Part shown: positions 1 through 37,340 of the stretch, in pieces
Numbering within the stretch: position 1 is the stretch's first letter
Layout: each line of letters opens with the position of its first letter
Program-made: the position numbers and the translations under genes
The notes under the pieces: model-generated
Database searches by the model: none
Told to the model about the DNA's origin: nothing
What the model saw: only the letters and a program-made list of their open reading frames with translations
Assembly (NCBI GenBank): GCA_964036045.1
Contig: OZ038378.1
Coordinates: 7,192,001 to 7,256,000 of the forward strand
Length of the DNA stretch: 64,000 nucleotides
Direction of reading: 5' to 3'
Origin: Eutreptiella sp. 'Long Island Sound 2002'
Lineage: Eukaryota > Protista > Euglenida

Positions 1-945
1 TGTTCATATGTTGTCCTCTTAGGTTGCTGGTTCCTATAGACTGCAAACACACGACCTTTGCACAGCACTACAGAGTTGGGGGAAGACGGCAAACAAGAAA
101 TTTTCGTGGCAAGGGGCCGCAAGCATGAGCCACCAGGGGGGGGGGGGGGGCATCATGCCCTGAGGGATGGTGCCACAGGTAAATTTGGAGGGCTGCGCCC
201 CCGGTTCGTAGCTTGGGTGATTTCCATCAACCGGGGGCGACACCCTGCAGGGCAGGGCCCCAAGGTGCGTGTCGCACCAACAAGCCCTCAAGCAACTGCA
301 CGAGTCAGGTACGCTATTGTAAACTACCTGGCCCCTTAGATCAGCCCTAATTTTCCGTCACTCATGATTCATTCACCTTGGGGTCAGCCCACACCCTCTG
401 TGTAGCTCACCACCTATCTCTCTCCGAGGTGATTGACAACAGAAACGTACTAAACTGCGGTCTGCCACCCTACAAGGCCTGAGAGCGAGGTGTTGGTCCT
501 GTGCAGGCCCGAGGGCACCGCAGCACGCGGGGGGGGGGGGGGGGTCAGGTTGGCCGCCCCTGCACAGGGCCTGCACGCCGCAGCAACGTAAAGTGGGAAA
601 GTCAAGGGAGCCGCCACAGCGGTGGCTGGGTCCCATGCACTATTGTAGGTTTTTCCGGAAGGTGCCTCCTCCTCGGCCCCTTTTCACCTACCGTGTTGGT
701 CGCCAAAAGATTTGGATTTATTGTTGTGCAATAGTTCTCAGTTCTTAGCACGCAGGCACTTCAATTTTTGTTTTATCTGTTGTGATACTTTGTTTCACTT
801 GTGGTATACCCATCTCCATATTTTCCTTATGCTTTCTGCATGCTAGTTGGATTGCACAACAAAAGACTGCTTTCCATCCTTTTCCATGTTCCTTGCCATC
901 TTTGCAGAGGAGGGCTCGGTTAAGGAAAGACAAGTGTGGGTATTG

Positions 946-1052
946 GCATGAGTATGGACATGGGTATGGGTATGGGTATGGCAACGGGTTGGGGTAGGAG
1001 TACGGATTTAGGTATGGCTATGGCTATGGGTATGGGTATGGATACGGGGATG
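946..1052. repeat. Degenerate (GGTATG)n hexamer tract
   Basis: Seen: runs of atgggt/atggct, e.g. tgggtatgggtatgggtatg at 961-980. Confidence 0.7.
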
Positions 1053-1084
1053 CTTTGGGAGTCGAGAAAGTTGCAATCGATTTT

Positions 1085-1491
1085 GGAAATACCAAGAGCA
1101 AGGTGCAGTGATTCGAGCGTGCAGGCTGAAGTGTGCAACGTGTGTAATGTGCAAAGTGTGGAGTGCTCGAAATGCAAAGTGCCCAGTGTGGAATGCACCA
1201 AGTATGTATTATACCGTGTGCCAAGTGCAAAAAGTGCAGTCAGTAGAGTGCATGGTATGCAGTATCCAAACTCGTATCATGCAATGAGCAAAGTGTGCAG
1301 TGTGCAGTGCAGTGCACAGACTGCATAATGTGTAGAACATAGAGTGTGCGACACGTAAGACGTGTAGTGTGCACAGTGTGCACTGCATATTGCACCAGGT
1401 GCATAAAGTGAAGTGTGCGCAGTGCCGCAGTGTGCAATGTCCAAAATGTGTTGTTTGTGCAATGGGCACCGCGAAGTGTGCAATGTGCGTG
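1085..1491. repeat. TGTGCA-rich low-complexity tract, left half; it resumes at ~15470-15720 beyond the LINE
   Basis: Seen: recurrent gtgtgca/agtgca words on both sides of the 14-kb element. Inference: one tract split by the insertion. Confidence 0.6.
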
Positions 1492-2384
1492 ACCCCCACT
1501 GCTGCCCAGGGGCGCGTGACCTCACCGTGGTGTGGGGGTGAAACCGGGGGGGGGGTCCCCCAGGCTAACACGCAATCTGGGGGGTGACCAGGTCCAGCCG
1601 CGGCGGCCTGGTCACGGGATCCCGCGCCCCACCCCTCGCCGGCCACCGTGGGACAGCCACGATGGCACAGGGCGGGCTCCACCGGGGGGTGGCGGTATGC
1701 AAGAGAGCCCCGGGTCTCCCTGTGGCCCAGCCCTCTCCAGGGCTCATGTGTTTCCCCCTCTCGCCCCCACCCACGGCGCCGTGTGTCTTTGCACAGGTAC
1801 ATCATGGGTGGGGACCGAGTACAGGAACGCCATACCGGGCCTGGGGTTAAACTCCATGCCTCGGACGGCTGCTACGAGGAATTTTGCGCACCGAGACCGG
1901 GGGAGGGTCCCGCGCCTACCGCTACGGTGCTCACTGCGCCGGGGCTAGGGTACCTTCCTATGGTTTCGGCTGCGACATGGAAGAAGGGGTGGCCCCCCGG
2001 TTTTGAATCGCGGAGGGGCGCCATCCCCTCCCAGTGGCCTGAGCGAAGGGGAGGCCCCCCGAGGCCCTGTTTCGCTGTGGAGGAAGTGTGAAATAAGGGG
2101 TGGCCCCCCTGTTCCAGGAACCGCGTCCGTGGGGAGCGCCGCCGTAGGCGCAGCCACATTGGAGGAAGTTTGAAAGAAGGGGAGGCCCCCCGAGACCGTC
2201 CCGTGGGTAACGCCAACGAAGGCGTTACCACTTTACCCGTCTTTGGAAGCAGGGGGGGCGCCATCCCCCCCAGGAGCTGTTATGACTTCGATGTGTATGT
2301 ATCAAGTAATGTAAGTACGTCAATGAAAGAACCTCAGTATTGTATAATGTACGCCTCCGGCCAACAGCAGAGAGGGCCGGAGGT

Positions 2385-2833
2385 CCGGGTAAAAGCCCCG
2401 GACCCCCCAAAGGCAGCCCCAAAGGTGAGTGCACCACTGGACGGGGCATGTCTGCGGGGTAAGAACATGCGCTGCGTAAACAAATAACTTAATAAATAGT
2501 GCTTATTGCTATAAGTAATGCTTAAACGGGTAAATGCCCCCCCCCCCCGGGGCCAGTTTAGTGCGCACCCCCCAGAGCCGGACTCGACCGGCCGTGCTGA
2601 GGCGAGCCCAGCAATGGGTATGACAGGCCAGACTTTAAGTGCTGGTAGCCACGCCTCAGCACACTCCGTGGGCTTATAAGGCCCACGGGGGCCCCAAATA
2701 CCGTTTCGTTCGGGAGTTAAGCCCCGGCGGAATTTGGGGTTGTTCGTGGTTAAGAGGACTCACGTTGAGTCCCAGCTACTGCTACCCCGGAGTTATGATC
2801 TCCGGTACTGCCTGCCTACTTGCCTGCTGCTGC
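2385..2833 (+). ncRNA. Unclassified structured RNA module in the LINE 5' region (copy A)
   Basis: Seen: homologous to 31969-32415 (-), with compensatory changes in three helices and a GCAA/GAAA tetraloop swap. Confidence 0.6.
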
Positions 2834-3069
2834 TAAGAGGTAGAAACCGGGTAGGACTACCCCCCCCCCCAACCCCCAAGCCTGCACGGCACCGGGGGAC
2901 CCCCACAGCGGCCGCAAGGGCTACGCGTGGGCGGCTCCTGGTTTCTGTCGCAGTGCAGAAAAGGTAGTTACCACGACCCCCCGAAAGCCCGCGGGGTCTG
3001 TGGTACCCCGTTCCCCCGGGCCCCACAAGGGACGCGCGGAGACGGGGTGGGCCCGTAGGGGTCGGGGGG

Positions 3070-5520
3070 AACCCTCCCCCACACAGCGGCGGGCACACCC
3101 GAGCCCCTCCGGTCCTGCCCGGGCCGCGGAGGGATAGGGACGCCCCGTGGGGGTTTTGAGTACGCACGAAGGGCTCCCTCCCCCACACAGCGGCGGTGAC
3201 ACCCGAGTCCCTCCGGTCCTGCCTGGGCCGCGGAGGGATAGGGACGTCCTCTGGGGTTTTGGGGGCGCACGGAGAGGTCCCTCCCCCACACAGCGGCGGT
3301 TACACCCGAGTCCCTCCGGTCCTGCCTGGGCCGCGGAGGGATAGGGACGCCCCGTGGGGGTTTTGGGGGCGCACGGAGAGGTCCCTCCCCCACACAGCGG
3401 CGGTTACACCCGAGTCCCTCCGGTCCTGCCTGGGCCGCGGAGGGATAGGGACGCCCCGTGGGGGCTTTGGGGGCGCACGGAGAGGTCCCTCCCCCACACA
3501 GCGGCGGTTACACCCGAGTCCCTCCGGTCCTGCCTGGGCCGCGGAGGGATAGGGACGCCCCGTGGGGGTTTTTGGGCGCACGGAGAGGTCCCTCCCCCAC
3601 ACAGCGGCGGTTACACCCGAGTCCCTCCGGTCCTATCCGGGCCGCGGAGGGATAGGGACGCCCCGTGGGGGTTTTGAGGACACACGAAGGACTCCATCCC
3701 CCACACAGCGGCGGTTACACCCGAGCCCCTCCGGTCCTGCCTGGGCCGCGGAGGGATAGGGACGCCCCGTGGGGGTTTTGGGGGCGCACGGAGAGGTCCC
3801 TCCCCCACACAGCGGCGGTTACACCCGAGTCCCTCCGGTCCTGCCTGGGCCGCGGAGGGATAGGGACGCCCCGTGGGGGTTTTGGGGGCGCACGGAGAGG
3901 TCCCTCCCCCACACAGCGGCGGTTACACCCGAGTCCCTCCGGTCCTGCCTGGGCCGCGGAGGGATAGGGACGCCCCGTGGGGGCTTTGGGGGCGCACGGA
4001 GAGGTCCCTCCCCCACACAGCGGCGGTTACACCCGAGTCCCTCCGGTCCTGCCTGGGCCGCGGAGGGATAGGGACGCCCCGTGGGGGTTTTTGGGCGCAC
4101 GGAGAGGTCCCTCCCCCACACAGCGGCGGTTACACCCGAGTCCCTCCGGTCCTATCCGGGCCGCGGAGGGATAGGGACGCCCCGTGGGGGTTTGGGGGCG
4201 CACGGAGTGGTTCCTCCCCCACACAGCGGCGGTGACACCCGAGTCCCTCCGGTCCTGCCCGGACCGCGGGGGGATAGGGACGCCCCGTGGGGGTTTGAGG
4301 GCACACGAAAGGTTCCCTCCCCCACACAGCGGCGGTTACACCCGAGCCCCTCCGGTCCTGCCTGGGCCGCGGAGGGATAGGGACGCCCCGTGGGGGTTTG
4401 GGGGCGCACGGAGTGGTTCCTCCCCCACACAGCGGCGGTGACACCCGAGTCCCTCCGGTCCTGCCTGGGCCGCGGGGGGATAGGGACGCCCCGTGGGGGT
4501 TCGAGGGCACACGAAAGGTTCCCTCCCCCACACAGCGGCGGTTACACCCGAGTCCCTCCGGTCCTGCCTGGGCCGCGGAGCGATAGGGACGCCCCGTGGA
4601 GGTTTGGGGACGCACGGAGTGGTTCCCCCCCCACACAACGGCGGTTACACCCGGGTCCCTCCGGTCCTGCCTGGGCCGTGGAGGAATAGGGACGCCCGCG
4701 GGGGTATCAAGGCGCGCGTATGAGTTCTTCCCCCACACAGCGGCGGTTACACCCTAGCCTCTCCGGTCGTGCCTGGGCCGCGGAGGGATAGGGACGCCCC
4801 GTGGGGGTTTGGGGGCGCACGGAGTGGTTCCTCCCCCACACAGCGGCGGTGACACCCGAGTCCCTCCGGTCCTGCCCGGGCCGCGGGGGGGTAGGGACGC
4901 CCCGTGGGGGTTCAGGGACACGCGGAGAGGTCCCCCCCTCGCACAGCGGCGGTTCCACCCGAGCCCCTCCGGTCCGGACGGGGCCGCGGAGGGGTAGGGA
5001 AGCCCCGTGGGGGTCGTGGGGGCACGCGTATGAGTCCCCCCCCCCACACAGCGGCGGCTACACCCGAGTCCCCGGTCCTGCCTGGACCAGGGAGGGATAG
5101 GGACGCCCCGTGGGGGTTGTGAGGGCACACGGAGGGGTCCATCCCCCACACAACGGCGGTCATGCCCGGTCCCTCTGGTCTTGCCCGGACCACGAAGGGA
5201 TAGGGACACCCCAAGGGCCGAGGACAGCACGCGAGGAGTCTCTTCCACACAACGGCGGTTGCACCCGAGTCCCTCCGGTCCTGCCGGAGCCGCGGAGGGA
5301 TATGGACACCCTGTGGGAGTTCGGGCACGCGGAGAGGTCCACCACCCACACAGCGGCGGGCACACTCGGGTCCCTCCGATCCCGCCGGGGCCGCGGAGGG
5401 GTAGGGACCCCCCTCGGGGGTTTGGGGACTCTCGGAGAGGGCTTGCCCCCACACAGCGGCGATCGCACCCGGGCCCCCCCCAGCCCTGCTTGAGCCGGGG
5501 AGGGATAGGGGCTCCCCGTG
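3070..5520 (+). repeat. Tandem array of ~23 GC-rich 104-bp monomers (LINE 5' UTR)
   Basis: Seen: unit ccctcccccacacagcggcggttacacccgagtccctccggtcctgcctgggccgcggagggatagggacgccccgtgggggttttgggggcgcacggagaggt. ORF starts recur at 103-104 bp spacing (3354, 3458, 3562, 3665, 3769, 3873). Terminal units are diverged. Confidence 0.95.
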
Positions 5521-5633
5521 GGGGGTCTGAAGGGCACTCCCAATTTGCGTTCTGTCCTGCCGCCCTCCATCGCGGAGGGAGGGGTGCGGGGTGCTGAGGT
5601 ACCCCCGTCTTTGCAGGACACAGAGAACGCAAA

Positions 5634-8600
5634 ATGAGTGGCCCTATCGACCTGGCTTTTCCCGGCGAACCCGACCACCGGGACTCCCCATTACTGGTTG
5701 CCATCCGGCAGGGGTCTTCGGCGGCGCACGGCCGCCTGAGGGATAGCTGGTCAGTGGCCAGTGACAAGGCGCTACTACAGGCCGCCGCGGATTCCCTCCC
5801 GGAGGTCGCCCGGGGGCGCCCGGAGGAGGTGCCGGACGCCCTACGCTGGGCCCGGCGCGTGGGGGTGATCACCGCCATTACGTCCATGGGGGTTATCTTG
5901 ACACCACGGGGGCTGTGCCTCACGGCCACGGTTACTGGGTCATACGACGCCCAGACTTTCGTCTCCCAGGACGTCCCCCTTATGGTGGAGGCTGGGGGAC
6001 CTCTGGTCGAGTACCTGGGGAATACGATACATCCCCGTCATCTGGATTTAGCCCGTCGGGTCATCTCGGGGTGCGCCCCTTTCGACACCCTACGGCTACG
6101 GAAGCGCTTGGCGCGGATCCTGAAGGTGGATGACGCCCTAGCCGAATCCGCCAGCGCACCGCAGGTGCACCACAGCACAGCCAACGCGGCTTTACGTCCA
6201 ATCGCTCCCTTTCTCTCCCCCGGCTGTCAAGCTGATTGGGGTCGTTTGGGGGCCAAGGACCAAGTGCGAATCCTTTGGGCTCTGCCCAAGCGGCCCACTG
6301 AGGTCTTACCTCACATCTCCGGCACGGGGAACGAGCTCTGGGCGGGATTAATGGTGTGGGCCTCCCGTCAAGTGGGGGGCGCCAGCGCGGGGGTACCGGT
6401 GACCCCGCTACCGAGGGGGTTACCTGAAATCCGGGATTGGCCCCTGGACGTTCTCCGGGGTGCCTTTGAGGCTTCCACCCTACCGATTACCACGGTGGAA
6501 GCACTGGGGGAGCTGCTAGGCGATATTACGCCATCTTGGGCCTCAGCCCCCGTTTTGGCGTTGCTTGCCTCTCGGGGTGCCGAAGCCCCTCTCAGCGCGG
6601 CGTCCTGGACGCGGGTATCCTCCCGCACCGGGGGTGGCACAGCCGCCGTGGACCTTCCCGTCCCGGCGGGCGCTAGGGCCTCGCCGGTTGTGGACGCAGA
6701 CGCAGCCGGGGATGACGATCCCACGCAACCGTACGTGAACGTGGACGGTGTAGATCCGACGGTCTCCGACCCTTGGCGGTTACTTGAGCCCTGTGCGGGG
6801 GCTACAACCGGCGCGACCCCTGCCGCGGGGGGCGACGCGGTCCCTCGAGGGGCACGTGACCCCGTGGGGGAATCCCCCTCCGACCCGACGGGGGTCAGCC
6901 GCGAAATAAAGTTTGGGGGCACCTCCATTTATGAGTTTGACGCGGAATCCCCAATAGGGGAGCGTGTGGAAGACTCTCCCACCCCACTGGCGATCCCTTG
7001 CCCTGCTGGCTCGGATCTCGGGGGCGGCTCCGGGCCGGCAGTTCGCCGCACCTCCCACGCGGTCGACAATCGGCTTGCGCCGTCCGACGGGGGCTGCGCT
7101 TTGGTGGCTGCCCATCGCGCGGCCCAATCGGGGTTTCCCCCGCCCATCTCTAATGCCCCTGGGGTCCTTGCCGGGGGCTTTGCCGGGGGCTCACACGCGG
7201 GGCCGGCACCTGCGACTCCGCAAGCGCCCGCGCCCGTGAGGGGCGGGGTGCATGTATCTCTTGGTGACGGGACTGGCCTCTTGTACCCACCGGGCACCAC
7301 GGCGGGCGAGCCCCGCCGGGGCGGCGTGCCCGACGTGAGCCCGGGTGAACGTTGGTGCCCGGAGTCCCCGGGGGCAGGGAGACGCCCCCCCATGGATGCG
7401 GGGCGCCGTCCCCCTCAGTGGGAGTCCCGTCTCCAGGACCTGGAGCGTGACCTAGAAGACGCCCAGGCCACGTGCCAGGCCCTGTCCTCCGAACAGGACC
7501 GCCGCCTGCAGGAGCTGCAGAGGGTCCGCGCGGACCTGCACCGCTCCGAGGGAGAGTTGGCGTCCATGCGGCGTGACCACGCCACGGTCAGCGGGGAACT
7601 GGTGCGGCAGCGCTCCCGCACGAGGTCCCTCGAGGAGGAGGGCAGCGGCCTCCGCCGACAGCTCGCTGACGCCCAGCGGGCGGCACGCGATGTCGCGGGG
7701 GCGGTGGACGAGCGCCTCAGCCGGCACCTCCCCGCCATCCTCGAGGCTGTGCAGATTGTTCGGGACGAACACATCTCACAGCCCGCGGTGGAGCGGGCGC
7801 TGCGGGGCTGGGTGCCCGCGGGGTAAGGGCCGCCCTCCACGGCGAACCCGAATTTCCGGGAGATCTGCGCGACTCTGGTCTGCGCAGCGGTCCTTCGGGT
7901 GGATCCCCCCCCGTCCCCGGAGCAGCTCTCTCGTCGCTTGCGGGTCCCGGTCTAGCCTGTCCTGCACTTCCCGACGGAGGCCGTAGGACAGGGACCGCTA
8001 TTGGGGATGTCCGCGGATACCCGCCCGATGGGCAGGGCCCCGGCACCGCACGAAGGGCCAGAGACCTCCCCGGTGGTCCGCTTAGCCGGAAAGCCCGGCG
8101 TCGAGGTCACCCCCGGGAACCGCTCCGGGGGGGACATCACTCCCACGACCACGGGTGCGGCCGGTGCGGCAGCCCCCACTCCGGGGCGGGACGAACTCTG
8201 CGCCCTCCTGGTGTACCTCAATGAGGTACCACCGGACTCGCAGACGGGGGAGGCCCAGAAGCTGCATCTGCACCTGGCTACCAGGCTGGACCTCCCCCCG
8301 GAGTTCCCCCAAAGCAACCTGCGGGCCCAGTACACGGCCCTGGGCAGGCTCCTGCCCACGCGGCCCGAGTTGGGCCACCTAGTCGGAGAGTTCGTCCGGG
8401 ACCGCCGGGCGGAGCCCTCCGGGTCTCAGACCCCGGTCCCTGACTCCCAGGGGGCGGCCAAGGTAGCGGCAGCGTCCCGGGCCAACCAGGCCGGAGGGAG
8501 CGGCAAGTCCCCTGGCAGGGGCAAAGGCGGGTCGGACCACGACACGTACTCCGTGGCCGTCATGGTCCGGTGGCGCGTCAACCCGCGCGACACCCCGGAG

Positions 8601-9605
8601 GCCATCTAACCCCTGTCCCCGGGGCGGTTGGGCATGGTCTTGAAGAAGGCCTTCGGGGACTTCCGTGTGTCCTACATCAAGGACGAAGGGCAGCTATGCC
8701 ACACGGAGGATGGAGGTTGGGCACTCGTGGGCGTGCGGCCCGAGGCTGCCTCCGCCTTGGAGGGGGGCGGGGGTGACGCCGACAAACAGTTCACCTACGA
8801 GTGGGCCAAGGCCAACAAACAACCGTATTCCGGCGGGCTGCTGCGGGCCCACCACGTGGAAAAGAGCAATGCTGTGCTCCAGCGGATGCGTAGTGGGGAC
8901 CTTATGGCAGGACCCAAAGGCTTGATCCGGGCTCGTGATCGGGACGGGGCCGGGGACGAGGGCCGGAAGCGGCGCCGGTCCCCCTCTTGGTCCCCCCCGC
9001 GGTCCTCCCATCGGTCGGAGGGAGACTACACCCCGCGACGGGGGAGCAGGTACCCCTCGCCGGAGGACGACTACCGTCGAGGAGGCTCGCGGCATACCCC
9101 CCAGTCGGTGGGGGGCCCGTGGGATGGGCGCTACGACTACCGTGCGCCGTCGCGGAGCGAGCAACCTCGCCAGCCACCACAATGGCTCCCCCGGGACGAC
9201 GGCTGGGGACAGGACTATCGGTCTTACGACCCCCCCACGAGTTACGGGGAACGCTCCCCCTACCCTCGGCCGGAGATGCACCCCATGGCTCCGCCTCATC
9301 AGGCGGCGGCGGCCAGCCCTCCGACCGCCGCCGTTTGGGGAGCGCCGCCCGTGGATCCCCGCTACCCGGGGGACGGCCGTGCGCCCCACTACGGGGCGGC
9401 CATGCCCCCGCAGGGGTTGGGCGTCCCGCAGGCGCCGTATCAGCACCAGCCATACGGACCACCGGCCCCGACCGCGGACGCGCCAGCGCCCCCCTCGGGG
9501 TACGCGGGGCCCTGGTACGGGGAAACAGTCCCAGCTCCCGCTGCCACAGCCCCGCCCGGCCCGGTTCACCCGGTGGCGCCCCCCACTTGGGGACCCAGCC
9601 CGTAA
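5634..9605 (+). CDS. LINE ORF1 reading frame (~1320 codons) broken by three in-frame stops; coiled coil, RRM-like and RS/Pro-rich segments
   Basis: Seen: ORFs 5634-7826, 8001-8609 and 8628-9605 share one frame, separated by TAA 7824, TAG 7953 and TAA 8607. Heptad-like LQDLERDLEDAQ...LRRQLADAQR at ~7420-7740. The RRM-like pattern YSVAVMVRW...VLKKAFGDFRV...GWALVGV...AASAL...FTYEWAK at ~8545-8815 is inference. Confidence 0.7.
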
Positions 9606-12600
9606 GGGGCGTTCCAGACGAACTCCCCCTCCCCGCGCCGGTCACGCTGGGGTGGGACGCCGGGGACGTGTTCTCTCCGGGGGCCGTGGCCCACGACCAG
9701 CTCAAGCTCCTGGCCCGGGACTCTGTGTGTCCGGGGCGCCCCTCTGCCCAGTGGGGAATTGTTCTCGGCATTTCTGGCGCCGTGTGCGGCGTGCGGGACG
9801 TGGCCACGGCGCTGGAGTGCTTACCGGGCCTCCACCCCGCGTTGGGGCACGTGTCCCTTTTCCAGGGAGACTGGCGCCTTCCCGCCATCCTTCAGCAGTG
9901 GGCGGCCCACATGGCCGTGTACCAAGTCTCGGGCGGCCATTCGGTGCAGGTGTACAGCGGTGGGGGGGGTGTCACCCACCCGCCCGGGGCTGAGGGATCC
10001 GTGACGTGGGTGCCCAGGTCCACGTACAGTCGCGGCCGGGTGGTGTTCAAAGCTGCGTCCAGCAGCTCCACCGCCTACGTGGCGGCCAACGTCGACGCGC
10101 GGGCACTGGGGCGGTATTTGCGGCGATCCACAGCGCTAGAGCTCCCCACCAAGGTCCGACAGGCCGTCCTCCGCCGCTTGGAACACACGACGGGTCCCAC
10201 TGGCCGGGGGGCGCTCGACGCCCTCTCTGGGGGCACCTCCAGCGGCCACCGCGGACTCGGGGACTTTCGGGCTATCACCCTGAACCTACAGAGAGGCCTA
10301 ATGGGCAAGATGCCAGCCCTGGGGTCTTGTCTGCGCGGGTGGGGTTGTCCGGATCTGGTGGGGCTGCAGGAAGTGGGCAAGATGCCCGCCAACATTGTGG
10401 CCCATGCCATGTACTGGGCCACATTCACCCCCGCGGCGCATCCGGCGGCCGGGGTGGGGCTGCTGGTGCGGTGGCATCCCACCTTTCGGGAGGTCTGGCG
10501 GGACATACACTCCAGCGGGCGCGGCGTTGCCCTGGAATACCACTGTCGGGGGGGACACATCCTGGCGGTGGTGGTGTATTTCCCGGCCGACCACGACTTG
10601 GACGTGGTGCGGAGCATCTTGTCGTGGGCCCTGGGCGTCATGGCCCCCCGTCGTGGGGTTTATACCCTGATGATGGGGGATCTCAACGCCAACCCGGGAT
10701 GGGCGACAGGCTTCCGGCAGGCCCCGGCTGCCCTCACCGTCCTTTGGGAGGAGTTTGTCCAGGACACTGGCCTGGTCCGCTGTTGCCCCACCTCCGAGGC
10801 GCCCACGTGGACCGACGGGCGGGGGTGCGTGGGGGTGATTGACCACGTGCTACAAGGCCCTGCCCCAAAGGAGGGACGTTTGTGGGTGGACGAGGCCTCC
10901 CCCTTCCCCTCTGACCACCGCCCGGTGGTGTGGGACGCCCGGGATTGCCAGGACCCTGAAGACAGGTCCCCGGTGCGGCTGCGCGCCAGGCACTTTCAGA
11001 TACGTGACCCAGGCATCACGGGCAGCTACCATGCGGCCTTGTCAGCGGCCCGCCGGGAGGAGGGTTTGCGACCCGATAGTCTGGCGGCCCTCTACGAGTA
11101 TTTCCTTTCCTCCACCATACGAGCGGTGGAGAGGGCCCATGGCCCCCCTCGTGAATTCGGGGAGCTCCCGGGGCGTGTGGACCAGGTCCACCGTCAGCTC
11201 CAGGCACACGCTAAGCGGTGCCCGCGGTGGTGGGAGTCACTGGACACGCTCAAAGAGCGTTTGGATCTCCGCCAGGACCTGGCGGAAGCCTGGGAGGTGG
11301 GGAATCTGCAGCGGTATCTCTCCCATCTCCCGGAGGTGGCCCCCTTCTCCAGACCATCCCGCGGGGCATTCCGCCACCTGTATGGGCCCGCTCGCACGCC
11401 GCCGGTCCAACCGCGGTTCTGCGCTCAAGTGGACGTGGCGCCGCGTGCCAGGGCCAAGGTGGCCCTGGACCAGGTGCGTCACCGACACCAGAAGACGCTG
11501 AGGGAGCTAACGCCGGGGGACGTCCGGGCCCTCACGGGTTGGATCACGCCCACACAGCTGCTGGGGTTGCCCACGGCTACGGTCCCCCACCTCCGCCGCA
11601 TACTTCAGCGCACCGGCAACACGGCCCCGGCTCGCGACCAGTTGCAGTACTGGATGTTGCGGGAGATGGACGACGACGGTCTTGCCATTGTGTGCGAGAT
11701 CGTCAACCGCTACATGCGGGGGGAGCGCCTGGAGGCCCTCTCGCACGGGGACCTCCACCTCCTCCCTAAGAAAGCTCCCCACGGCGTTGGGGCCAACGAC
11801 CGCCCACTCACCAACCTAGTCCTCCTGCGCAAGGTGGTGGGTCTGGTGGTGAAGGAAGAGGAGCAGCCCTGGCTTCGGGAGCACGGGTTCCTCCCCCCCA
11901 GCCAATTCGCCCTCTGGCCGGGAACGTCCATATGGGACTTCCTCAGGGTACTGCACGATTATTTCTGGTACCGCTGGGGCTCCGGGGGCGAAGCCTGGCC
12001 CGTCCTCGACGACGCCCGTCACGCTTTCGGTTCCCCAGACCACGTGTCCCGGGACTCTGTACACCGGGTGCTGGGTTACGGCCCGGAGCTGTGCCACCTG
12101 CACCGCTCCCTGGTGGAGGACATGCGCCTGGACATGGGCGGCACGGATGATGTCGACCATGCCGAGGGGTGGTTAGATGCAGGGTCCGGACAGGGCTGCC
12201 CTTTGTCCCCGCTAGATTACGCGCCCATGGGGGAGGTGAGGGCGAAGATGGTGTCCCGTGAATACCCCGGGGTGCTCACCCCAGCAGGCCTTTTACACAG
12301 TCTGGCCTGGGCCGACGATACGGTCTGGCTCGGGGGCTCCCCGGAGGATGTGTCCGCCATCGCCGGGGCCCTCCCCGCCGCAGAAGACGCGGTGGCTCTG
12401 GGATCCGACGTGTCGAAAATGCACGTCCTACGGACCTGGATGGACGGGCAGCGCGTACGGTACGGGGTTCCCTCGGTTCTGATGAACGGGGTTCGGCTGC
12501 CCGTGCCGTCAGAGAAGGATTACATCCGCTCCCTGGGGCGGCACGCCCTCCCACACACGTATCACAGGGAGGATTTCCGGAAGTTCATGATGGCGGCGCG

Positions 12601-14377
12601 GCGTGCTTCCGCGGTTATCCCCATCAAGTCCTTGCGGGCGCAATACCCCCCGGCCATGTACAACCCGAAGGCGGGCGGCATGGCGCGTTTCCAGGCCGGG
12701 GTTCGGCCCCCCCCGGTCCGGGTATGGCACCTCGCGGGCTACCCCGCCATCTCCGCCCTCCGGGCGATTGTGGGGGAAAACCTGCCAGCGCACCGTCTGC
12801 TCGGGCCTGTGCAAGCGGGGCTCTCCGGCATTCGCCCTCTGGGTCCGGACGTGTTGACCACGTTTGTGCTCAACTACGCCCGTCAGCGGAATCACCCCAA
12901 TCCCCTGACCCGGGCTTCCGCCCGGTGGGGGCACATGTGCGCCCTTTGGCGGTTCCACCCGGACATGCCCTGCATACACCAGGGCCTGGCGGACTGCGAT
13001 TGCCACCCCACGGACCATGACCGTTTCGTGCGCTATACGTGGCTCATGGAAATCCGGGTCTGGCCCGCTCCGGGGAGCCACGCCGTGGAGGTGAGCAAAC
13101 ACCCACTGGGCGCGGCGACGACCATCGACGAGGCGAATGACGGCCACGCGGCTTTGGCGGCCGGTTATCGGGACTGGTCCAGCACCCGCAGGGCGGGTTG
13201 GCCATCACGGTTTCGTGGGCCGGATACCCTCCCCCCGTGGCCCCGCTGCGTGCGATGGGCCCAGGAGGTACACTCCGAGGGGGTCACCCTGCAGAGCGTG
13301 CCTGCGGAGGCGGTTTTCGTGCAGGATGCCTCCTGGTATCCCAACCACACGGCCGGGGGCGGGCTGGTGGTGGCGGACCCCACGACAGGCTGGCACCGGA
13401 TCTACCGGATCCCCATCCTAGTCCACGTAGACGGGTCCTACCAGGCGGAACTCTACGTGGCCTGGGAGGTTTTGCGGGCACGGGGCGCCCACCGGGTGGT
13501 GTGGGGCACCCGAGGCCGGCAATGGTCCTTCCACGATAGCAAGGGCTATATAGACGCCGTCCAGTCCCGCAACCCCGGATCCTCCCCGCTGTCGGACGAC
13601 TTGCTGCGGGCGTGCCGGGGTTTGCTGTCCGAGGGGTTCAGTGCGCCTCAGCACCTGTACTCCCACAGAGTCGGCACCTTCCTGGACACCCTGCTGGACA
13701 TAGCCGACGGGGAAGCCAAGAAGCAGGCTTCCGGGGCCCGCCCCGAGGTGGGGTGGATCCGGGGGCTTCAAACACCCCAGGTCTGTTTCACCCACAACGA
13801 CGTCCAGGTGCACAACCTGGACCGTCTGGTCGAGACGTCGTCGCGCCGTCTGTGGGATCTTCATATGGAGGCCCCCGAGCGCGGGGAGCGCCAATCCCTG
13901 GGGGTTTACTCCGCCGTTACTGAGCGGGGTTTAATCCGGTGGGGGGCACACCTCCGCACGATGGCACGCCGGGACGGGCTGGGGTTCGCCGGGGACGAAC
14001 GCCCCTGCCCCGCTTGTGGCCAGACAGTGGGAGCGCGCCATTGGGTTTCCACTTGCCCGTGGCGCCACCTCTTTCGGTTGGCGATCCACACGCAACTGCA
14101 CATACGCCTGGACACGCTCTGTGCACGTTGGCAGCGCCGCGCAGTGTCCCCATGGGGGATTGTGGTCCTGTACGGGCCCGATGCCTTCGCCCTCAGCGTG
14201 GGCTCACCGGGGGACGACGACCCCCATCCCGGGGCGGGGGTACGCACGTTGTATATCGATCCCTACGGGGAATGGGAACCTGGGGACGTACGGTACCTGT
14301 ATGACAGGGGATTAGTGGTGGGCGCAGCCCAGCGGGTGCTGGCCACGGTCGTCAACTTTTGGGACGCCCTGGACTGA
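8987..14377 (+). CDS. LINE ORF2: APE endonuclease, reverse transcriptase, RNase H, CCHC knuckle (true start probably at or after ~9606; first ATG after ORF1 is 9911)
   Basis: Seen: APE motifs ITLNLQ, GLQE, MGDLNA, PTW, IDHVL, SDHRPV (~10265-10935). RT motifs RPLTN, GSGQGCPLSP, WADD (12308-12319). RNase H motifs FVQDAS, QAELY, FHDSK, IAD (~13310-13720). CPAC-x7-H-x4-C at ~14003-14060. Confidence 0.95.
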   Translation: MVPPAVLPSVGGRLHPATGEQVPLAGGRLPSRRLAAYPPVGGGPVGWALRLPCAVAERATSPATTMAPPGRRLGTGLSVLRPPHELRGTLPLPSAGDAPHGSASSGGGGQPSDRRRLGSAARGSPLPGGRPCAPLRGGHAPAGVGRPAGAVSAPAIRTTGPDRGRASAPLGVRGALVRGNSPSSRCHSPARPGSPGGAPHLGTQPVRGVPDELPLPAPVTLGWDAGDVFSPGAVAHDQLKLLARDSVCPGRPSAQWGIVLGISGAVCGVRDVATALECLPGLHPALGHVSLFQGDWRLPAILQQWAAHMAVYQVSGGHSVQVYSGGGGVTHPPGAEGSVTWVPRSTYSRGRVVFKAASSSSTAYVAANVDARALGRYLRRSTALELPTKVRQAVLRRLEHTTGPTGRGALDALSGGTSSGHRGLGDFRAITLNLQRGLMGKMPALGSCLRGWGCPDLVGLQEVGKMPANIVAHAMYWATFTPAAHPAAGVGLLVRWHPTFREVWRDIHSSGRGVALEYHCRGGHILAVVVYFPADHDLDVVRSILSWALGVMAPRRGVYTLMMGDLNANPGWATGFRQAPAALTVLWEEFVQDTGLVRCCPTSEAPTWTDGRGCVGVIDHVLQGPAPKEGRLWVDEASPFPSDHRPVVWDARDCQDPEDRSPVRLRARHFQIRDPGITGSYHAALSAARREEGLRPDSLAALYEYFLSSTIRAVERAHGPPREFGELPGRVDQVHRQLQAHAKRCPRWWESLDTLKERLDLRQDLAEAWEVGNLQRYLSHLPEVAPFSRPSRGAFRHLYGPARTPPVQPRFCAQVDVAPRARAKVALDQVRHRHQKTLRELTPGDVRALTGWITPTQLLGLPTATVPHLRRILQRTGNTAPARDQLQYWMLREMDDDGLAIVCEIVNRYMRGERLEALSHGDLHLLPKKAPHGVGANDRPLTNLVLLRKVVGLVVKEEEQPWLREHGFLPPSQFALWPGTSIWDFLRVLHDYFWYRWGSGGEAWPVLDDARHAFGSPDHVSRDSVHRVLGYGPELCHLHRSLVEDMRLDMGGTDDVDHAEGWLDAGSGQGCPLSPLDYAPMGEVRAKMVSREYPGVLTPAGLLHSLAWADDTVWLGGSPEDVSAIAGALPAAEDAVALGSDVSKMHVLRTWMDGQRVRYGVPSVLMNGVRLPVPSEKDYIRSLGRHALPHTYHREDFRKFMMAARRASAVIPIKSLRAQYPPAMYNPKAGGMARFQAGVRPPPVRVWHLAGYPAISALRAIVGENLPAHRLLGPVQAGLSGIRPLGPDVLTTFVLNYARQRNHPNPLTRASARWGHMCALWRFHPDMPCIHQGLADCDCHPTDHDRFVRYTWLMEIRVWPAPGSHAVEVSKHPLGAATTIDEANDGHAALAAGYRDWSSTRRAGWPSRFRGPDTLPPWPRCVRWAQEVHSEGVTLQSVPAEAVFVQDASWYPNHTAGGGLVVADPTTGWHRIYRIPILVHVDGSYQAELYVAWEVLRARGAHRVVWGTRGRQWSFHDSKGYIDAVQSRNPGSSPLSDDLLRACRGLLSEGFSAPQHLYSHRVGTFLDTLLDIADGEAKKQASGARPEVGWIRGLQTPQVCFTHNDVQVHNLDRLVETSSRRLWDLHMEAPERGERQSLGVYSAVTERGLIRWGAHLRTMARRDGLGFAGDERPCPACGQTVGARHWVSTCPWRHLFRLAIHTQLHIRLDTLCARWQRRAVSPWGIVVLYGPDAFALSVGSPGDDDPHPGAGVRTLYIDPYGEWEPGDVRYLYDRGLVVGAAQRVLATVVNFWDALD

Positions 14378-14386
14378 AAGCGGGAG

Positions 14387-14929
14387 ATGCCCATCGTCCC
14401 GGCAGCCAGGGAGGTCTATTACCGGGACGAGGACGGTCACACGTGGGACCTGGCGACCCGGGTACCAGCACGCTTCGACCCGACCTCCCACGAGTGGGGA
14501 AGCCGGCCGGCGATGGCCGGGCTGTGGCCGGGGGCGAGTCTGCTGTGGCCCGTGTGCGAGCGCGGACAGCTGTCTGCCGTTCTGCCCCCCGGGCAGGACT
14601 GGCCCCCACGCTGGGGCGGGACCCAGAGGGTCCTCTGGTATTCGGACCGGCCTCTGCCCAAAAGCTTGGGGCGTTGGCCCCGGGAGGTCCGCGATGCGGA
14701 TTTGGTCATCATTGATGGGCCGGGCGGCCTGCCGCCGCGGCGGTTAGCCTGGCTCCTTTCGTACGGGCCACCCTCCCGTTATATGGGCTTGTACGAGGCG
14801 CGGGAGGCACATGACCGTCGCCAAGTGCGCCGGTTGCGCGATATGCTGATGGCCACCTTGCGCATGGCAGGTTATCAGCCCAGGGTCTCTTACCAGTTGC
14901 TGGGGTTGGCTTTGCGGCAACCCCGGTGA
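14387..14929 (+). CDS. 180-aa orphan ORF in frame with ORF2, four codons after its TGA
   Basis: Seen: GAC TGA AAG CGG GAG ATG at 14372-14389; the sequence has globular-protein composition. No family recognised. Confidence 0.5.
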   Translation: MPIVPAAREVYYRDEDGHTWDLATRVPARFDPTSHEWGSRPAMAGLWPGASLLWPVCERGQLSAVLPPGQDWPPRWGGTQRVLWYSDRPLPKSLGRWPREVRDADLVIIDGPGGLPPRRLAWLLSYGPPSRYMGLYEAREAHDRRQVRRLRDMLMATLRMAGYQPRVSYQLLGLALRQPR

Positions 14930-17900
14930 TCCCCTCGCTACGCCTGGACCCAGGTGTGTTCCAGGGGTGCAAACCGGGGGGACGGGGTCAGGGACAGGGT
15001 CGGCAGGTTGGTGGAGGGCCCCGCGCACGGGCGCCTTCGGCAGAAGTGCCGTGCGCGGGGGAGGGTGGGGGGATCGGGCCACGGACCAAGCCCCCGTGTT
15101 CCGCCGGCTAAACGCCGCCCAGTCGGTAGTACCTGGCGGCTAAGGGCCCACACCCGTGAGACTGCGTCCCCCTTCCCTTGGGGGGGTGGTGGAACGTGCC
15201 GGAAGTGGAGCCGGCGCTCCGCCTCGCCCCCTGTTCCGTGCCCCTGGGTGGTGATCCGGCTACGTGTAGGGCAGGGGTGCATGCGCGTGGTGCGGACCGG
15301 GGGACAAGAGGAGGAGACGAAGAGGAGAGCCGCCGCCATGATGCTTAGCCGGACGGGTTGGGATGTAACCCCCCTCCCGGTCGCGCGCCAGACCGTGGAG
15401 GGCCGGCGGGCACCATGGGGATGTGCCGCGGGGGCGCCCTACCGGGGGACCGCATCTCCTCCTCCTCCTGCGTGTGCCACTGTGCACACTGTCTAGTGTG
15501 TAAACTGTAACATTCCGGATGCTGTGCGGTGTGCAGAGTGCACTGTGTTTGAAGAATTTGTCCTCAGCAATGTATAAAAAGCAGCATGCACTGTGCTGTT
15601 CACAATGTTCAACGTGTGCAATGCAGTTTGGAACAGCTGGATATTGTGCAGCGTACAAGGTGCGTGTTGTGCAGTGAGCGGAGTGCGCTTTGTGCCTTGT
15701 GCAATGTTCCCTTCCCCACCAGCCCAGCCCCAATACCTCGTGTTGATTAGGGTGTGGGTTGCAACGCCCCCTTGTAGTAGAGCACCCTCAAAATTGGACA
15801 ATTGGGATTTCTGGGCCAGTTCCCAGCAAAAGTGCACGTGGCTTCCCAAAACTGTCAACACTGGCAAAAAAAAATGGTGCTAATCGGGGCATGCCAGATA
15901 GGGTGTACGTGGTGCTATTTGCATTGAAACCATTGTGGATGATGCAAAATGGGTTAGGGTACTGTCTGGTCGCTTTTCTAGCCAAATAGCGGCCTCAATG
16001 GACCCCCTTTTGGAACCAGGGTGAACAACACGGTCGAGAAGCGCTGGAAAGGTGCAATATGTGATGTGTTTGTATCGTTGTTGGGGGTTTACGCTTTCGT
16101 TGTGCAGTACACGTATCATGGTCATCCCAGTACGTGGGCGCGCTAGCCGAGCACAGAGTTTCTTGTTGGGCAATCAGGTTCGCCATCAAGTTGGGTTGCA
16201 AGTGGGCGATGGTGTCCGATGAGTCGGAGGTAGTGGCATGGTGGGTGCCTAGGCTATGGGGCACAATGAAATGGTGTAGACAGCAACAGCTTTTGTGTTG
16301 ACTTGTCTTGCAATCGGGCATTGTTGTGCATGTGGCCTGGGACTCAAGAAGCACCAGCAAACCGGCCTAGCAGGCTTGCTACCTGTCTATCGTCCATGGA
16401 CAAATTCACAGTTTTGGCTCATCGTCGTTGGGGTACGCAATTGAGTTACTACCCCTTGTCATGGGTTGTGAGCTGTTTGTGGGCCTGATTGGAAGCAGAA
16501 ACGGGCCTGAGTACCAGAGTTGGATTTCAAAATTACCTACGCGCTTGCCACTTGGACACTTTTGTTCACATATTCCTTTCATTCTCCTCTCCACGCATTG
16601 TGCCAATTGTCTACGCCCACCTCTCCCCAAATACCTGCATTGCCTACTACCGGGGGGTGTTTTTGCATTTAAATGACTCACCTCACCTCAACGGCGTTGA
16701 AGGCTCGGTTTGCACTCTTGTGTTGCAAGTCAGCGAGAGCTTGGGGGTCTTTGCAGCTCACACGCCGTGGAAGAAGTGGTGAATGCCGTGCTGAATATTG
16801 ATGAAGAGTTGGAAAGCTATGCAGTCACAGTGTATGGACTGGATGAGGCGGATTATTTTATTTTTTAAGGCCAGTCAGCGCACAAGCCTACTGAGCGGAC
16901 AAAAGGAGCACAGAGAGGAAAAAGGAAAAGGAGAGGATGCCACTGTACGAGAAGATGGGTACTCTCAGGAAGGGGACTCTGGTCAGTGCGTTGTTAACGA
17001 TGCAAAACAAAACACACTCGCACCCATACCCATACCCATACCCACACACATTTCGACACAGTCAGAACCATCACCGTTACCACTGAACACCTTGTCAGCG
17101 TTTACTGCCCCAGGCGTCTGCAAATGTAGTGCAAGCCACAATGCCTCAGACCAGTCCCCCGTTTGGCGAAGTCTTGACTCATATAAGGCGGCTGGTATGA
17201 TTTGAAGGCCTGGGCCTGGGCGAGCATGCGACAGGGCTGTGTTGGAGTGGTGTCAATGTACAGCGGTGTGCGAGGGATGAGGGATTGGCCAGATGCATTG
17301 TGTGGCGTACCCCAGGGTATGAATGGCACGTGTGGCTTTTTGTGAAATCATTTTGGGAGACAAAATTATTCCCCAAATGAATTTTTCGAATTTGACCCCT
17401 CAGACCCCCCCCCCCCAACCACCAAGGCCTTGTGCCAACCCCCCCCCCCCCCTCACAGCTGGGTGCCGTTTTTTTTGGTGGGGGGGGGGGGCTCAAAAAT
17501 TGGTTGGCCTATTGCGGCAACTGCACGTCGATGCAGACCTAGGTCCCATTGAAATTTTTTCTTCTATGTGAACCCCCCAACCAATGGCTTGGATCCCGGG
17601 GTTCTATCTCTGGGTACCCAGGATCGGTCCCCCTGTGGGGCTCCACCGGTGAGCCATTGGCCGTTTTTCATTTGGTGACAATGGCAGCAGACATAAACCC
17701 AGTGCGGGGCATATAGCTCCATGAGGCCACCTGTTGGTGTACATCGGCCCCTAAAATTCCACAATGCAGCCGCTCAATGGCACCTTAAGAGGGGGGGCCT
17801 CACGACTCCCTCTGCTCCTCGAAGTGCCTTGCCGAAGGACAATAGAATTTTCGTCTTTTCTGGCCATTCGTCATCGAGGATTGTCACAGTTCATTAGACT

Positions 17901-20132: not shown

Positions 20133-20170
20133 CTGAGTGTCTATTTTTTTCAAGTGTCTATTTTTTTTTG
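20133..20170 (+). other. Two tandem relics of the euglenid spliced leader
   Basis: Seen: ctgagtgtctattttttt-ca-agtgtctatttttttttg. Established, recalled from memory: the euglenid SL exon ends CTGAGTGTCTATTTTTTTTCG. Confidence 0.75.
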
Positions 20171-24889: not shown

Positions 24890-25424
<535 letters not shown>

Positions 25425-25729
25425 CGAAGGCGCTGTTACCAAAGGGCAAAGGCCGGGATGTCTACCCACGGGTAAAGGTAAACGGGCTGGGCTGTGTGTG
25501 TTGTGTGCGCGCTGTGTGTAAGTGTGTTGTGGCATAGCCGGACCAGTGCACTCTCGCACTTGGCCGACACTGCCTTGCCGACGCCTGCGCGCAGTCACAC
25601 GGGGTCTCATTTGCCCACTGCACCCTGCGTGCCGCGCTGCACCACCAGTGCCTTCTCTGTGGTGCCGCATTGCTTGGCGCTCGGCACCACACTGCCTGTG
25701 TGTGCCCTGCTGCTCCGTTGTTGTGGGCA

Positions 25730-26290
25730 GGGGGCAGTGGGCAGTGTTACGCACCGCCTGGGGGCTGTGGGCAATGGAAATAGCGCTTCGCACTGCCTCA
25801 CTGCCTGGGGGCGGTGGGCAGTGCAACTCCTGCAATCCGCTGCCTCACTGCCCGGGGGCAGTGGGCAGTGCAACTCCTGCAATGCACTGCCTCAGTGCCC
25901 TGGGGCAGTGGGCAGTGCATCTCCTGCAACGCACCGCCTCACTGCCTGGGGGCAGTGGAGGGCGCAACTCCCGCAATGCACTGCCGCACTGCCTGGGGGC
26001 AGTGGGCAGTGCAACTCCTGCAATGCACTGCCTCACTGCCCTGGGGCAGTGGGCAGTGGAACTCCTGCAATGCACTGCCTCACTGCCTGGGGGCAGCGGA
26101 CAGTGCAACTCCTGCAATGCACTGTCTCACTGCCCTGGGGCAGTGGGCAGTGGAACTTCTGCAATGCACTGCCTCACTGCCTGGGGGCAGTGGGCAGTGC
26201 AACTCCTGCAATGCACTGTCTCACTGCCCCGGGGCAGTGGGCAGTGCAACTCCTGCAATGCACGACCTCACTGCCTGGGCGCAGTGGCCG
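25730..26290. repeat. ~47-bp minisatellite, ~12 units, each an imperfect palindrome
   Basis: Seen: ggggcagtgggcagtgcaactcctgcaatgcactgcctcactgcct; aactcc recurs at 25825 and 25872. Confidence 0.9.
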
Positions 26291-29200: not shown

Positions 29201-30530
29201 ACGCAGCGAACATGGCAACAGGGCTGGGGGCGAACTGTGCAGCGTACACAGCGGTCAAACCGTTCACGGCGAATGGGTCGGCAATGTGGGATGCCCAGTT
29301 CTCAACAGGGCCCTCACCAGTCTCGATGGCCCGCACGTAGTAGCCGAACATCGAGAACATGGCAAGACGGCCGTGCTTGATCTCCTTCACCTTCAACTCA
29401 GCGAACGTGTCAGGGTCGTAAGCCAATCCCAGAGGATCGAAGGCTTCACCAGGGTGCAGCTTATCCAATCCCTCACCCAATGGGCCAGACTCAGCTGCAC
29501 GGTAAGCCTCAACGGCTCCCACCAACAGAACCTGGCAGGCCAGGATGGCCAGGATGGATTGGGCGTGGACCAGCTGAGGCTCACCCAAGTAGTTGATACC
29601 ACCCTCACTGAAGATGGCGGCACCAGCCTTGAACCAGACAGCGGAGTCCCCGGCGAAGGAGATGCCTCCTCCGTACTTGGCAAGGAACTCTGGGGTGATG
29701 CACCCCAAAGTGCCCAACATGGCCCAACGGGCATGGATCAGCTCGGCCTCACGGTACTTCTCCAAAGTGGTAGGGTCAGCACCCAGTCCAGCAGTGTCCC
29801 AACCGTAATCACCAGGCAGCTCACCAGTCAGGTATGCAGGCACGTTCTGGGTGTAGGGGCCCAACCACAGGTTCCGGTCAGGGCCGTACTAGAGGTCAAG
29901 AGGGGTGACGGACTTCTGGAAACTTGCGGCCAGACACAGCGAACATGGCAACAGGGCTGGGGGCGAACTGCGTCACGTAGGCACTGGTCAAACCGTTCAC
30001 GGCGAATGGGTCGGCAATGTGGGATGCCCAGTTCTCAACAGGGCCCTCACCAGTCACGATGGCCTGCACGTAGTAGCCGAACATCGAGAACATGGCAAGA
30101 CGGCCGTTCTTGATATCCTCTACCCTCAACTCAGCGAACGTGTCAGGGTCGTCAGCCAATCCCAGAGGATCGAAAGCTTCACCAGGGTGCAGCAGATCCA
30201 AATCCTCACCCAGAGGACCTCCGTTCACACGGTAAGCCTCAACGGCACCCATCAGCACAACCTGGCAGGCCAGGATGGCAAGGATGGACTGGGCGTGCAC
30301 CAAATGGTCGCTGCCAAGGTAGTCCAGACCGCCCTCAGAGAAGATCTGAGCACCAGCCTTGAACCAAACGGACTCGCCGAAGGGCACACCGGCGTACTTG
30401 GCCAACAGCTCAGGGGTCAAGCAGCCCAAAGTACCCAACATGGCCCAACGAGCGTGGATCAGCTCAGCCTCGCGGTAGGCAGCGAAGGTGGTAGGGTCGG
30501 CGGCAAGACCAGCAGTGTCCCAGCCGTAGT
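26290..30530 (-). pseudogene. Lhcbm: Intronless fragment of an LHCII (Lhcbm) polyprotein: six units (A partial, B, A', B, A, B) joined by short linkers; disabled
   Basis: Seen: repeated [32 protein letters not shown] and EIKNGRLAM motifs with linkers SPVAMFA(A/V)S(S/G)R. Lesions: TGG>TAG at ~29890, +1 frameshifts at 29920-29922 and 27025-27027, and a 1-nt deletion at ~28903. No transit peptide and no introns. Established: euglenids encode LHC as linker-joined polyproteins. Confidence 0.92.

Positions 30531-33347: not shown

Positions 33348-37340
<3,993 letters not shown>

Follow-up and report, generated by a model that had tools for sequence, protein, structure and literature searches.

A candidate cis-acting RNA domain shared by the leaders of two otherwise different mobile-element families of a Eutreptiella species

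Why should an autonomous LINE and a non-coding element, which resemble each other nowhere else, carry the same stretch of about 480 nucleotides in their leaders? The question is raised by a 64,000-nucleotide stretch of the genome of Eutreptiella sp. (contig OZ038378.1; below, the window), in which positions 2360-2845 of the forward strand and 32440-31970 of the reverse strand align as one block with 87.6% identity across 476 columns. Copy A (2360-2845, +; edges set by blastn and nhmmer) is situated in the 5' UTR of what we call the A-type LINE, and copy B (31970-32440, -) inside a non-autonomous B-type element, the size being about 480 nt in both. When the window sequence was compared, with the blastn and nhmmer boundaries for copy A, nothing alignable was found in the flanks beyond the block. 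The initial annotation of this DNA had described a module common to two otherwise different leaders, and it is indeed about 87% identical inside and bordered by unrelated flanks outside. The orientation of the block agrees with that of the LINE ORFs and of a light-harvesting complex (LHC) gene captured by the B-type element. We propose, with a probability of little more than one half (about 0.55), that the block is a selected, cis-acting, multi-hairpin RNA domain of a transcribed non-LTR leader, which has moved between element families.

Ten extra copies were obtained from one ENA assembly; all 12 copies represent one genome and are related by descent. Six of them (L001-L006) were found by means of the translated ORF crossing copy B, through a search of a protein collection and the contigs encoding the hits, and four (L007-L009 and the divergent L012) through homologs of the A-type ORF1 with the block upstream. 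Alignment A4 contains 11 copies (without L012) and alignment A5 all 12. In the tree of the block the B-type copies group in a single clade (support 100/100) and the A-type copies take a basal position; L012, whose block is 76% identical overall, occupies a long branch. Copy B is 99% identical to the block of L001 and 90-97% identical to the remaining B-type copies. A protein-coding reading was rejected: in the A-type copies and in L004-L006, stop codons and indels interrupt the 126-aa ORF that crosses copy B.

The A-type LINE is about 14 kb long (1490-15469, +), and L007-L009 share exactly the same span. It consists of a 5' region, the block, an array of a 103-nt unit repeated 24 times (3072-5524), ORF1 (5634-7826, +), ORF2 (8987-14377, +) and a (CTC)n tail. 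An APE endonuclease (Pfam PF03372, match at 9977-11086) is the sole tool-confirmed domain of ORF2; the reverse transcriptase (RT) motifs GCPLSPL and WADD were spotted by eye in the translation, and no RT domain was found in this ORF by Pfam or PDB sequence search. At both junctions of the LINE there are microsatellites of the TG/GTGC type, as seen in three to four independent copies (window 1430-1500 and 15440-15560; L007 3010-3075 and 17815-17880; the 5' junctions of L008 and L009), and the element looks like an APE LINE targeting microsatellites. The approximately 870 nt upstream of the block, from about position 1490 of the window, are common to four A-type copies. Site-specific insertion of the LINE into a block-bearing multicopy target was considered and rejected, as the A-type flanks are unlike the B-type loci and four A-type copies carry the block internally.

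Some further observations concern the surroundings of the A-type leader. Its 5' region (window 1900-2290) contains repeats about 80 nt long (such as 2078-2109 and 2160-2191), whose number differs among genomic copies, as judged from many joints in public sequencing runs that skip 135-230 nt. Estuary metatranscriptome and metagenome runs (X7, X8) yielded contigs with 0-2 differences from window 1912-2368 and 2715-2866; because these contigs include the family-specific flank and differ so little, the same or a very close organism was present in those samples. Upstream of the LINE in L007, a called gene (344-730) has a UvrD-helicase Pfam match; it may be a host gene or belong to a Helitron.

Copy B lies in a B-type element (25424-33557, -) with (CA)n on both sides. 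In element orientation this element comprises a 5' region of about 1.15 kb, the block, a 94-nt array (30531-31968, -), a 47-nt array, a 330-nt 3' region and (CA)n. Its members (copy B, L001 and L003-L006) are devoid of ORFs, apart from the captured LHC. The 5' end, CCTGAGTACTCCCC..., follows a (CA)n-type repeat, and the approximately 1.15 kb upstream of the block are common to five B-type copies. Only the block and a TATAA motif preceding it are common to the A-type and B-type elements; their 3' ends are unlike, and their orientations in the microsatellite are opposite.

Between the 94-nt and 47-nt arrays of the window copy there is an LHCII polyprotein (26277-30618, -), also found in this place in L001 (5843-12200) and missing from the other B-type copies; it looks like a host mRNA that was captured in a mobile element and then copied or duplicated. 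B-type elements also occur head to tail with only (CA)n or (CACCA)n between them (L005 1-4650 and 4653-8995; upstream in L003), an arrangement suggesting that new elements repeatedly inserted into the microsatellite tail of one already present.

Two candidates for additional block-carrying LINEs were considered. That the B-type sequence is the leader of a second autonomous LINE finds no support, as the ORF1-like stretch of L005 is unique and lies beyond an interruption; the other B-type copies terminate in the 330-nt 3' region and (CA)n. The ORF in question (L005 9768-11704, downstream of the interrupted B-type element) is 33% identical to residues 20-311 of the A-type ORF1 and may belong to a distant LINE relative. 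Nor does L002 represent a third block-carrying family: since the second copy of its LINE, L010 (96% identical), starts at the 3' edge of the block and is without it, L002 is a nested insertion into a B-type fragment. This third LINE family (L002 6311-12426, L010 6841-10086, L011 8126-13024; 5' end TTACACAAAAAGCCCAGAC) shows a weak RVT_1 match (L002 10992-12101), and its proteins bear no relation to those of the A-type LINE; in L002 this third LINE was inserted within the CTG-rich 3' tract of the B-type block.

The block is far more abundant than the A-type sequences around it. Word depth in contigs from public runs on this organism amounts to 100,000-200,000 across 2390-2844, as compared with 500-4,000 in the upstream flank of the A-type and 5,000 immediately past 2844. 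This profile marks the block as a unit with sharp edges and a very high copy number. Some 1,500 variant contigs from these runs match the stretch, and the B-type sequence is their dominant downstream continuation. Two metatranscriptome libraries gave low-depth contigs over the block and the A-type flank, which are assembled contigs with possible DNA carry-over. Exact-pattern scans of JGI metagenome contigs revealed no copies elsewhere. On the 3' side, the edge is formed by a pyrimidine-rich CTG/CTGC tract ending in AAG-AG (2806-2852, +; defined from the alignment), and homology to the B-type copies stops between 2830 and 2852. The least conserved part is an A+T-rich stretch (2469-2530, +), where the alignments diverge and the read depth dips.

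Such discrete edges, together with a word depth much above that of the A-type flanks, could indicate that the block is a functionless passenger, the relic of an independent short mobile element or of a captured host fragment which had arrived in the ancestors of both families, with its conservation due to youth and gene conversion. The patchwork of sequence states across the families (at the pair 2791/2801, and in L006, which resembles the A-type at 2620-2645) suggests conversion or recombination and would fit such an origin. The same can be said of L012, where the block (76%) is no better conserved than ORF1 (72-80%). However, in L008 and L009 the 3' part of the block is 95.0% and 92.8% identical to the window copy, as compared with 83-87% for ORF1 and ORF2, and no free-standing copy occurs among the 12. 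A tRNA-derived SINE head was likewise rejected: ARAGORN found no tRNA in the window, Rfam gave no tRNA, SRP or 5S match, and nothing resembling a 7SL head is present. In view of these facts, and of the contrast between shared and private substitutions described below, we regard the passenger origin as quite improbable.

Another possibility arises from the upstream edge. The TATAA motif (2342-2346, +) is located directly upstream of the block and is invariant in 12/12 copies, L012 included; homology between the families starts exactly there, and the spacing to a conserved GCCAAC is about 20 nt in the A-type and about 30 nt in the B-type. We infer a TATA box from this arrangement. A second invariant element is the 24-nt stretch GTTAAGAGGACTCACGTTGAGTCC (2750-2773, +), identical in 12/12 copies, again including the otherwise 76%-identical L012. 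Within it, 2756-2772 is predicted to form a 7-bp hairpin with a CGU loop, and as DNA it is an inverted repeat with an ACGT core, so that its role could be played at either the DNA or the RNA level. One might therefore regard the block as a DNA promoter or enhancer cassette picked up by recombination, in which transcription would start about 30 nt after TATAA, the ACGT-centred repeat would be a factor-binding site, and the hairpins would be palindromic sites or by-products, their compensatory changes stemming from template-switch mutation. Autonomous and non-coding elements both need transcription, and in trypanosomatid retroposons the Pr77 sequence already represents a promoter module of this shared kind (PMC1874656, PMC8190864). 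Against such a cassette speaks the fact that none of 11 copies, sampled regardless of their upstream sequence, begins at the presumed start site; hence the copied RNA begins 0.9-1.15 kb further upstream. The structural data presented below bear on the same question, and altogether we hold the cassette to be unlikely, though worth keeping in mind.

The initial annotation had proposed a covarying fold on the basis of copies A and B, and RNAalifold applied to these two copies recovers its helices. The three compensatory pairs and the GNRA hairpin on which that proposal was built were found where it had placed them: 2596/2660 is G-C in copy A and A-U in copy B, 2699/2732 is U-A and C-G, 2791/2801 is A-U and G-C, and the loop of the hairpin 2606-2619 reads GCAA and GAAA, respectively. 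A fourth pair, belonging to a short hairpin near 2386-2400 on the 5' side, distinguishes the two families, being C-G in that of copy A and G-C in that of copy B. When all 12 copies are considered, the pairs proposed originally are complementary in every copy or connected through G-U intermediates, and three new compensated pairs appear (2668/2686, 2669/2685 and 2698/2733). The best-supported helices are 2594-2604/2652-2662, 2664-2690, 2691-2704/2727-2740 and 2787-2805; the short 5' hairpin near 2386-2400 also counts among the supported ones.

From the 5' side (coordinates of copy A, + strand), the first prominent feature is S1, a long stem-loop (2405-2459) formed by CCCC...GGGG with an inner GGUG/CACU hairpin and predicted in every fold. 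It is nearly invariant, with 96-100% canonical cells, and all three changes in L012 keep the predicted pairing. Inside the helix 2594-2604/2652-2662 (element 2594-2662) lie the GNRA hairpin 2606-2619 and a second, small one at 2627-2646; pair 2596/2660 of the helix is G-C in four copies, G-U in one and A-U in seven, and the GNRA loop is GCAA or GAAA in 10 of the 12 copies. The hairpin 2664-2690 has a stem of 11-12 bp (2664-2675/2679-2690) with two compensated pairs: 2669/2685, mostly U-A, is C-G in L007 and L009, and 2668/2686, mostly G-C, is U-A in L009. In the same stem C2667U in L008 gives a U-G pair, and there is one internal U-G which never varies. The following helix, 2691-2704/2727-2740 (element 2691-2740), contains an inner hairpin at 2711-2726. 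Its pair 2699/2732 occurs in three Watson-Crick states (U-A in seven copies, C-G in four, G-C in one), 2698/2733 is mostly A-U and in L012 G-C, and three independent C-to-U changes in this helix yield U-G pairs. All cells are canonical in the hairpin CCGGRG/CYCCGG (2787-2792/2800-2805; element 2787-2805), where 2791/2801 is A-U (4), G-C (7) or G-U (1); because both Watson-Crick states occur in both families, several events or recombination must have taken place at this pair. One part of the original fold was not confirmed. The pseudoknot postulated between 2646-2651 and 2747-2752 is almost invariant, and its few changes, namely T2646C in L009 and the combination of G2748A and C2773T in L012, are compatible instead with local pairing of 2746-2749 with 2772-2775.

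Is the number of compensatory changes larger than one would expect in any set of related copies? To avoid circularity, the fold was fixed from the consensus alone, with a pair span of at most 80 nt, and the null distribution was obtained by shuffling whole column patterns among columns of the same consensus base, a procedure that keeps the phylogeny and the mutation spectrum. With 11 copies, eight pairs were compensated while 1.73 +/- 1.25 were expected, and 2 of 3000 shuffles reached eight. Compensated cells numbered 21 (2.6 expected; 0 of 3000 shuffles), and broken cells 108 instead of 139 (P = 0.008). When variants present in at least two copies were counted, there were six compensated pairs versus 0.69 +/- 0.81 expected (0 of 5000 shuffles). 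Addition of L012 weakens the excess of compensated pairs (10 versus 5.0 +/- 2.1; P = 0.02); broken cells in the 12 copies number 155, with 195 expected (P = 0.003). Collection and alignment of genomic copies had been suggested in the initial annotation as a check of its candidate RNA, and the 12 copies aligned here do show an excess of compensatory change, on an independently defined fold, as a structured cis-acting RNA should. The compensations fall on different branches of the copy tree; the covariation amounts to roughly 6-10 events, among copies of one genome that are related by descent.

Private substitutions behave differently. They occur at 0.135 per paired and 0.133 per unpaired column, and among the 39 that fall on pairs, 30 break the pair, eight produce a wobble and one is compensated. 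Selection on the lineages that propagate, followed by neutral decay after insertion, would leave shared variants compensated and private ones not, as is the case here. A functionless passenger does not predict shared variants to be compensated so far above expectation when private ones are not. It should be noted that template-switch mutation within DNA hairpins can generate compensatory pairs without selection, and that gene conversion, with thousands of copies taking part, could look like conservation. A DNA cassette is opposed by the compensation of at least five separate hairpins, with G-U intermediates and invariant internal G-U pairs that would be meaningless in duplex DNA.

As to the strand, it had been argued previously that G-U pairs fall on the sense strand of the element. 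This argument holds weakly: about seven G-U pairs in helices never vary, and two of them are internal. Two G-U/G-C alternations are shared between copies, and a shared A-C state was found nowhere in the well-supported helices. The folding energy is -132.6 kcal/mol for the sense strand (z = -4.7) and -125.8 kcal/mol for the antisense strand (z = -3.5). Taken together, the invariant internal G-U pairs, the shared alternations and the lower folding energy modestly favor the sense strand.

When a LINE leader contains a large, conserved RNA with several helices and a GNRA loop, a ribozyme comes to mind, the more so as HDV-like ribozymes are known from the 5' termini of R2 and L1Tc, related trypanosomatids being among the hosts (PMC3185411, PMC4035085). 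The block might be a self-cleaving ribozyme that processes the element RNA and either represents a new class or has diverged very far from the HDV-like type. We scanned the whole 64-kb window with cmscan against Rfam 15 at gathering thresholds and found no family; permissive scans (E up to 5-10) of 2200-3000, 31900-33600 and 1400-2400 gave chance-level matches only (12-23 bits, versus thresholds of 34-100). A search of Rfam had been proposed along with the original candidate, and for the block it gave nothing beyond chance level at either stringency. These scans produced no covariance-model match to hammerhead, twister, twister-sister, pistol, hatchet, hairpin, VS or GIR1, and none to the Rfam HDV, CPEB3 and drz models at E up to 10. 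Using our own approximate descriptor on seven copies, element 5' ends included, we found no HDV-like nested double pseudoknot (P1, P1.1, P2, P3 and P4, with the catalytic C in J4/2) conserved between copies; the descriptor matched 0-3 times per sequence, and 0-2 times in shuffled sequence. Moreover, the block does not lie at a 5' terminus: it begins about 870 nt (A-type) or 1,150 nt (B-type) past the shared element 5' ends, and since all full copies keep these 0.9-1.15 kb upstream, which cleavage during transcription would have cut away from the RNA that is copied, it is not a ribozyme of the R2 or L1Tc kind that releases the 5' end. With the proposed pseudoknot also unsupported, the suggestion of a ribozyme finds no support, no known self-cleaving core having been found in a block that is internal in both families, and we judge it highly improbable. 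The other suggestion made at that time, a cis-acting element, remains reasonable; the block is common to two leaders and its compensatory change is above chance.

A separate problem is whether the block might belong to an intron or outron that controls splicing or the addition of the spliced leader, its structure tuning the balance between unspliced template and processed mRNA. Motifs resembling a 5' splice site (AAG/GUGAG, 2425-2432) and a 3' splice site (branch-like CUUAC/CCUAC, a pyrimidine tract and an AG near 2848) are kept in nearly all copies. Nearly all Euglena mRNAs receive a spliced leader by trans-splicing, and mRNAs of the host group are trans-spliced. The same window, a piece of nuclear DNA, contains a spliced-leader relic, namely two tandem partial copies of the Euglena spliced leader (CTGAGTGTCTATTTTTTT) in genomic DNA at 20133-20170; the same leader sequence is used for E. 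gracilis and E. longa (PMC5654406, PMC6242988). Nevertheless, the motifs are short, every genomic copy retains the block, and a joint from 2427 to 2849 is absent among the 15 of 61 joints listed for the contigs of public runs. Involvement in splicing therefore appears very unlikely to us. A scan for promoters and terminators of the bacterial type found nothing; the host is a eukaryote.

How would a cis-acting RNA domain operate in such leaders? In the mechanism that we favor, the domain would sit 0.9-1.15 kb from the element 5' end, after TATAA and before the pyrimidine-rich tract and the family-specific arrays, and selection on base pairing in lineages that still propagate would keep it. Because the autonomous LINE and the non-coding element share only the block, it has probably passed from one family to another by recombination or template switching. 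The role of the domain may be host-facing: it might, for example, stabilize an RNA that receives no spliced leader, promote the export of this RNA from the nucleus or control its processing. Such a role is favored because the block persists in a non-coding element whose 3' end is unlike that of the LINE and whose mobilizing enzyme is presumably another one; serving a need common to retroelement RNAs through host machinery is thus more likely than binding of one family's own proteins. A purely translational role is disfavored since the non-coding B-type element keeps the block. The TATAA motif and the ACGT-centred inverted repeat may add a promoter or enhancer role at the DNA level. The copies with their boundaries and contexts, the surplus of compensatory change and the lack of any match to known RNA families are observations; we infer that the sense RNA is the selected molecule, just as we do the transfer between families and every specific function named here.

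Among known systems, the closest in distribution is Pr77/L1TcRz of L1Tc, NARTc, ingi, RIME, SIDER and DIRE, which is, like the block, a short module in the 5' region common to autonomous LINEs and non-autonomous elements, in hosts that are euglenozoans as well. Pr77 acts on two levels, as a DNA promoter and as a structured RNA (PMC3383444, PMC1874656, PMC4035085). When length, position, fold and sharing are compared, the differences are nevertheless considerable. Pr77 has 77 nt, occupies the very 5' end and forms an HDV-like ribozyme, whereas the block has about 480 nt, lies 0.9-1.15 kb inside the element, away from the first nucleotides, and yielded no HDV-like fold; unlike Pr77, it is carried by families with unrelated 3' ends. 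The 5' RNA of R2 offers a different parallel, being a folded RNA of several hundred nucleotides with compensatory change in a target-specific non-LTR element; its 5' pseudoknot region acts in cis and controls protein binding and second-strand cleavage (bioRxiv 10.1101/2023.04.07.536001). R2 RNA, however, binds R2's own protein and is family-specific, whereas the block is shared with a non-coding element and its pseudoknot is not supported.

The leaders of mammalian L1 elements, in which 5' UTRs are replaced and which in the mouse contain monomer arrays, consist of modules that are promoters at the DNA level. These exchangeable modules include a tandem monomer array comparable to the 103 nt x 24 array described here, and in both cases elements that are related may bear unrelated leaders, just as unrelated ones may have leader modules in common. 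We know of no covarying RNA fold reported as shared between families for the L1 modules. The constitutive transport element (CTE) of MPMV and the RTE of IAP are structured cis-acting RNAs of 150-250 nt that recruit host factors for unspliced retroelement RNA, and elements of this type occur in unrelated retroelements. They resemble the block in concept; Rfam scans detected no similarity in sequence or fold, and an export or stability role modeled on them is conjectural. It is also conceivable, albeit distinctly unlikely in our estimation, that the block represents a new class of functional RNA domain passed among retroelements, either a new ribozyme or a platform dedicated to host factors. If so, a platform of this kind would enable an RNA lacking a spliced leader to persist, to be exported from the nucleus or to undergo processing in an organism in which almost every mRNA receives one, and the block would be a euglenid counterpart of Pr77.

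Very little is known about the expression of retroelements in euglenids, whose mRNAs are trans-spliced and whose promoters are poorly defined. An abundant RNA domain of 480 nt would offer a concrete handle on this problem, amenable to probing and deletion and usable as a bait for host and element factors. Even if the block were merely a promoter cassette or a passenger, it would still document modular exchange of LINE leaders in a protist. It constitutes a candidate new RNA family for Rfam and, with Pr77 as the first, the second euglenozoan case of a leader module that different retroelement families have in common.
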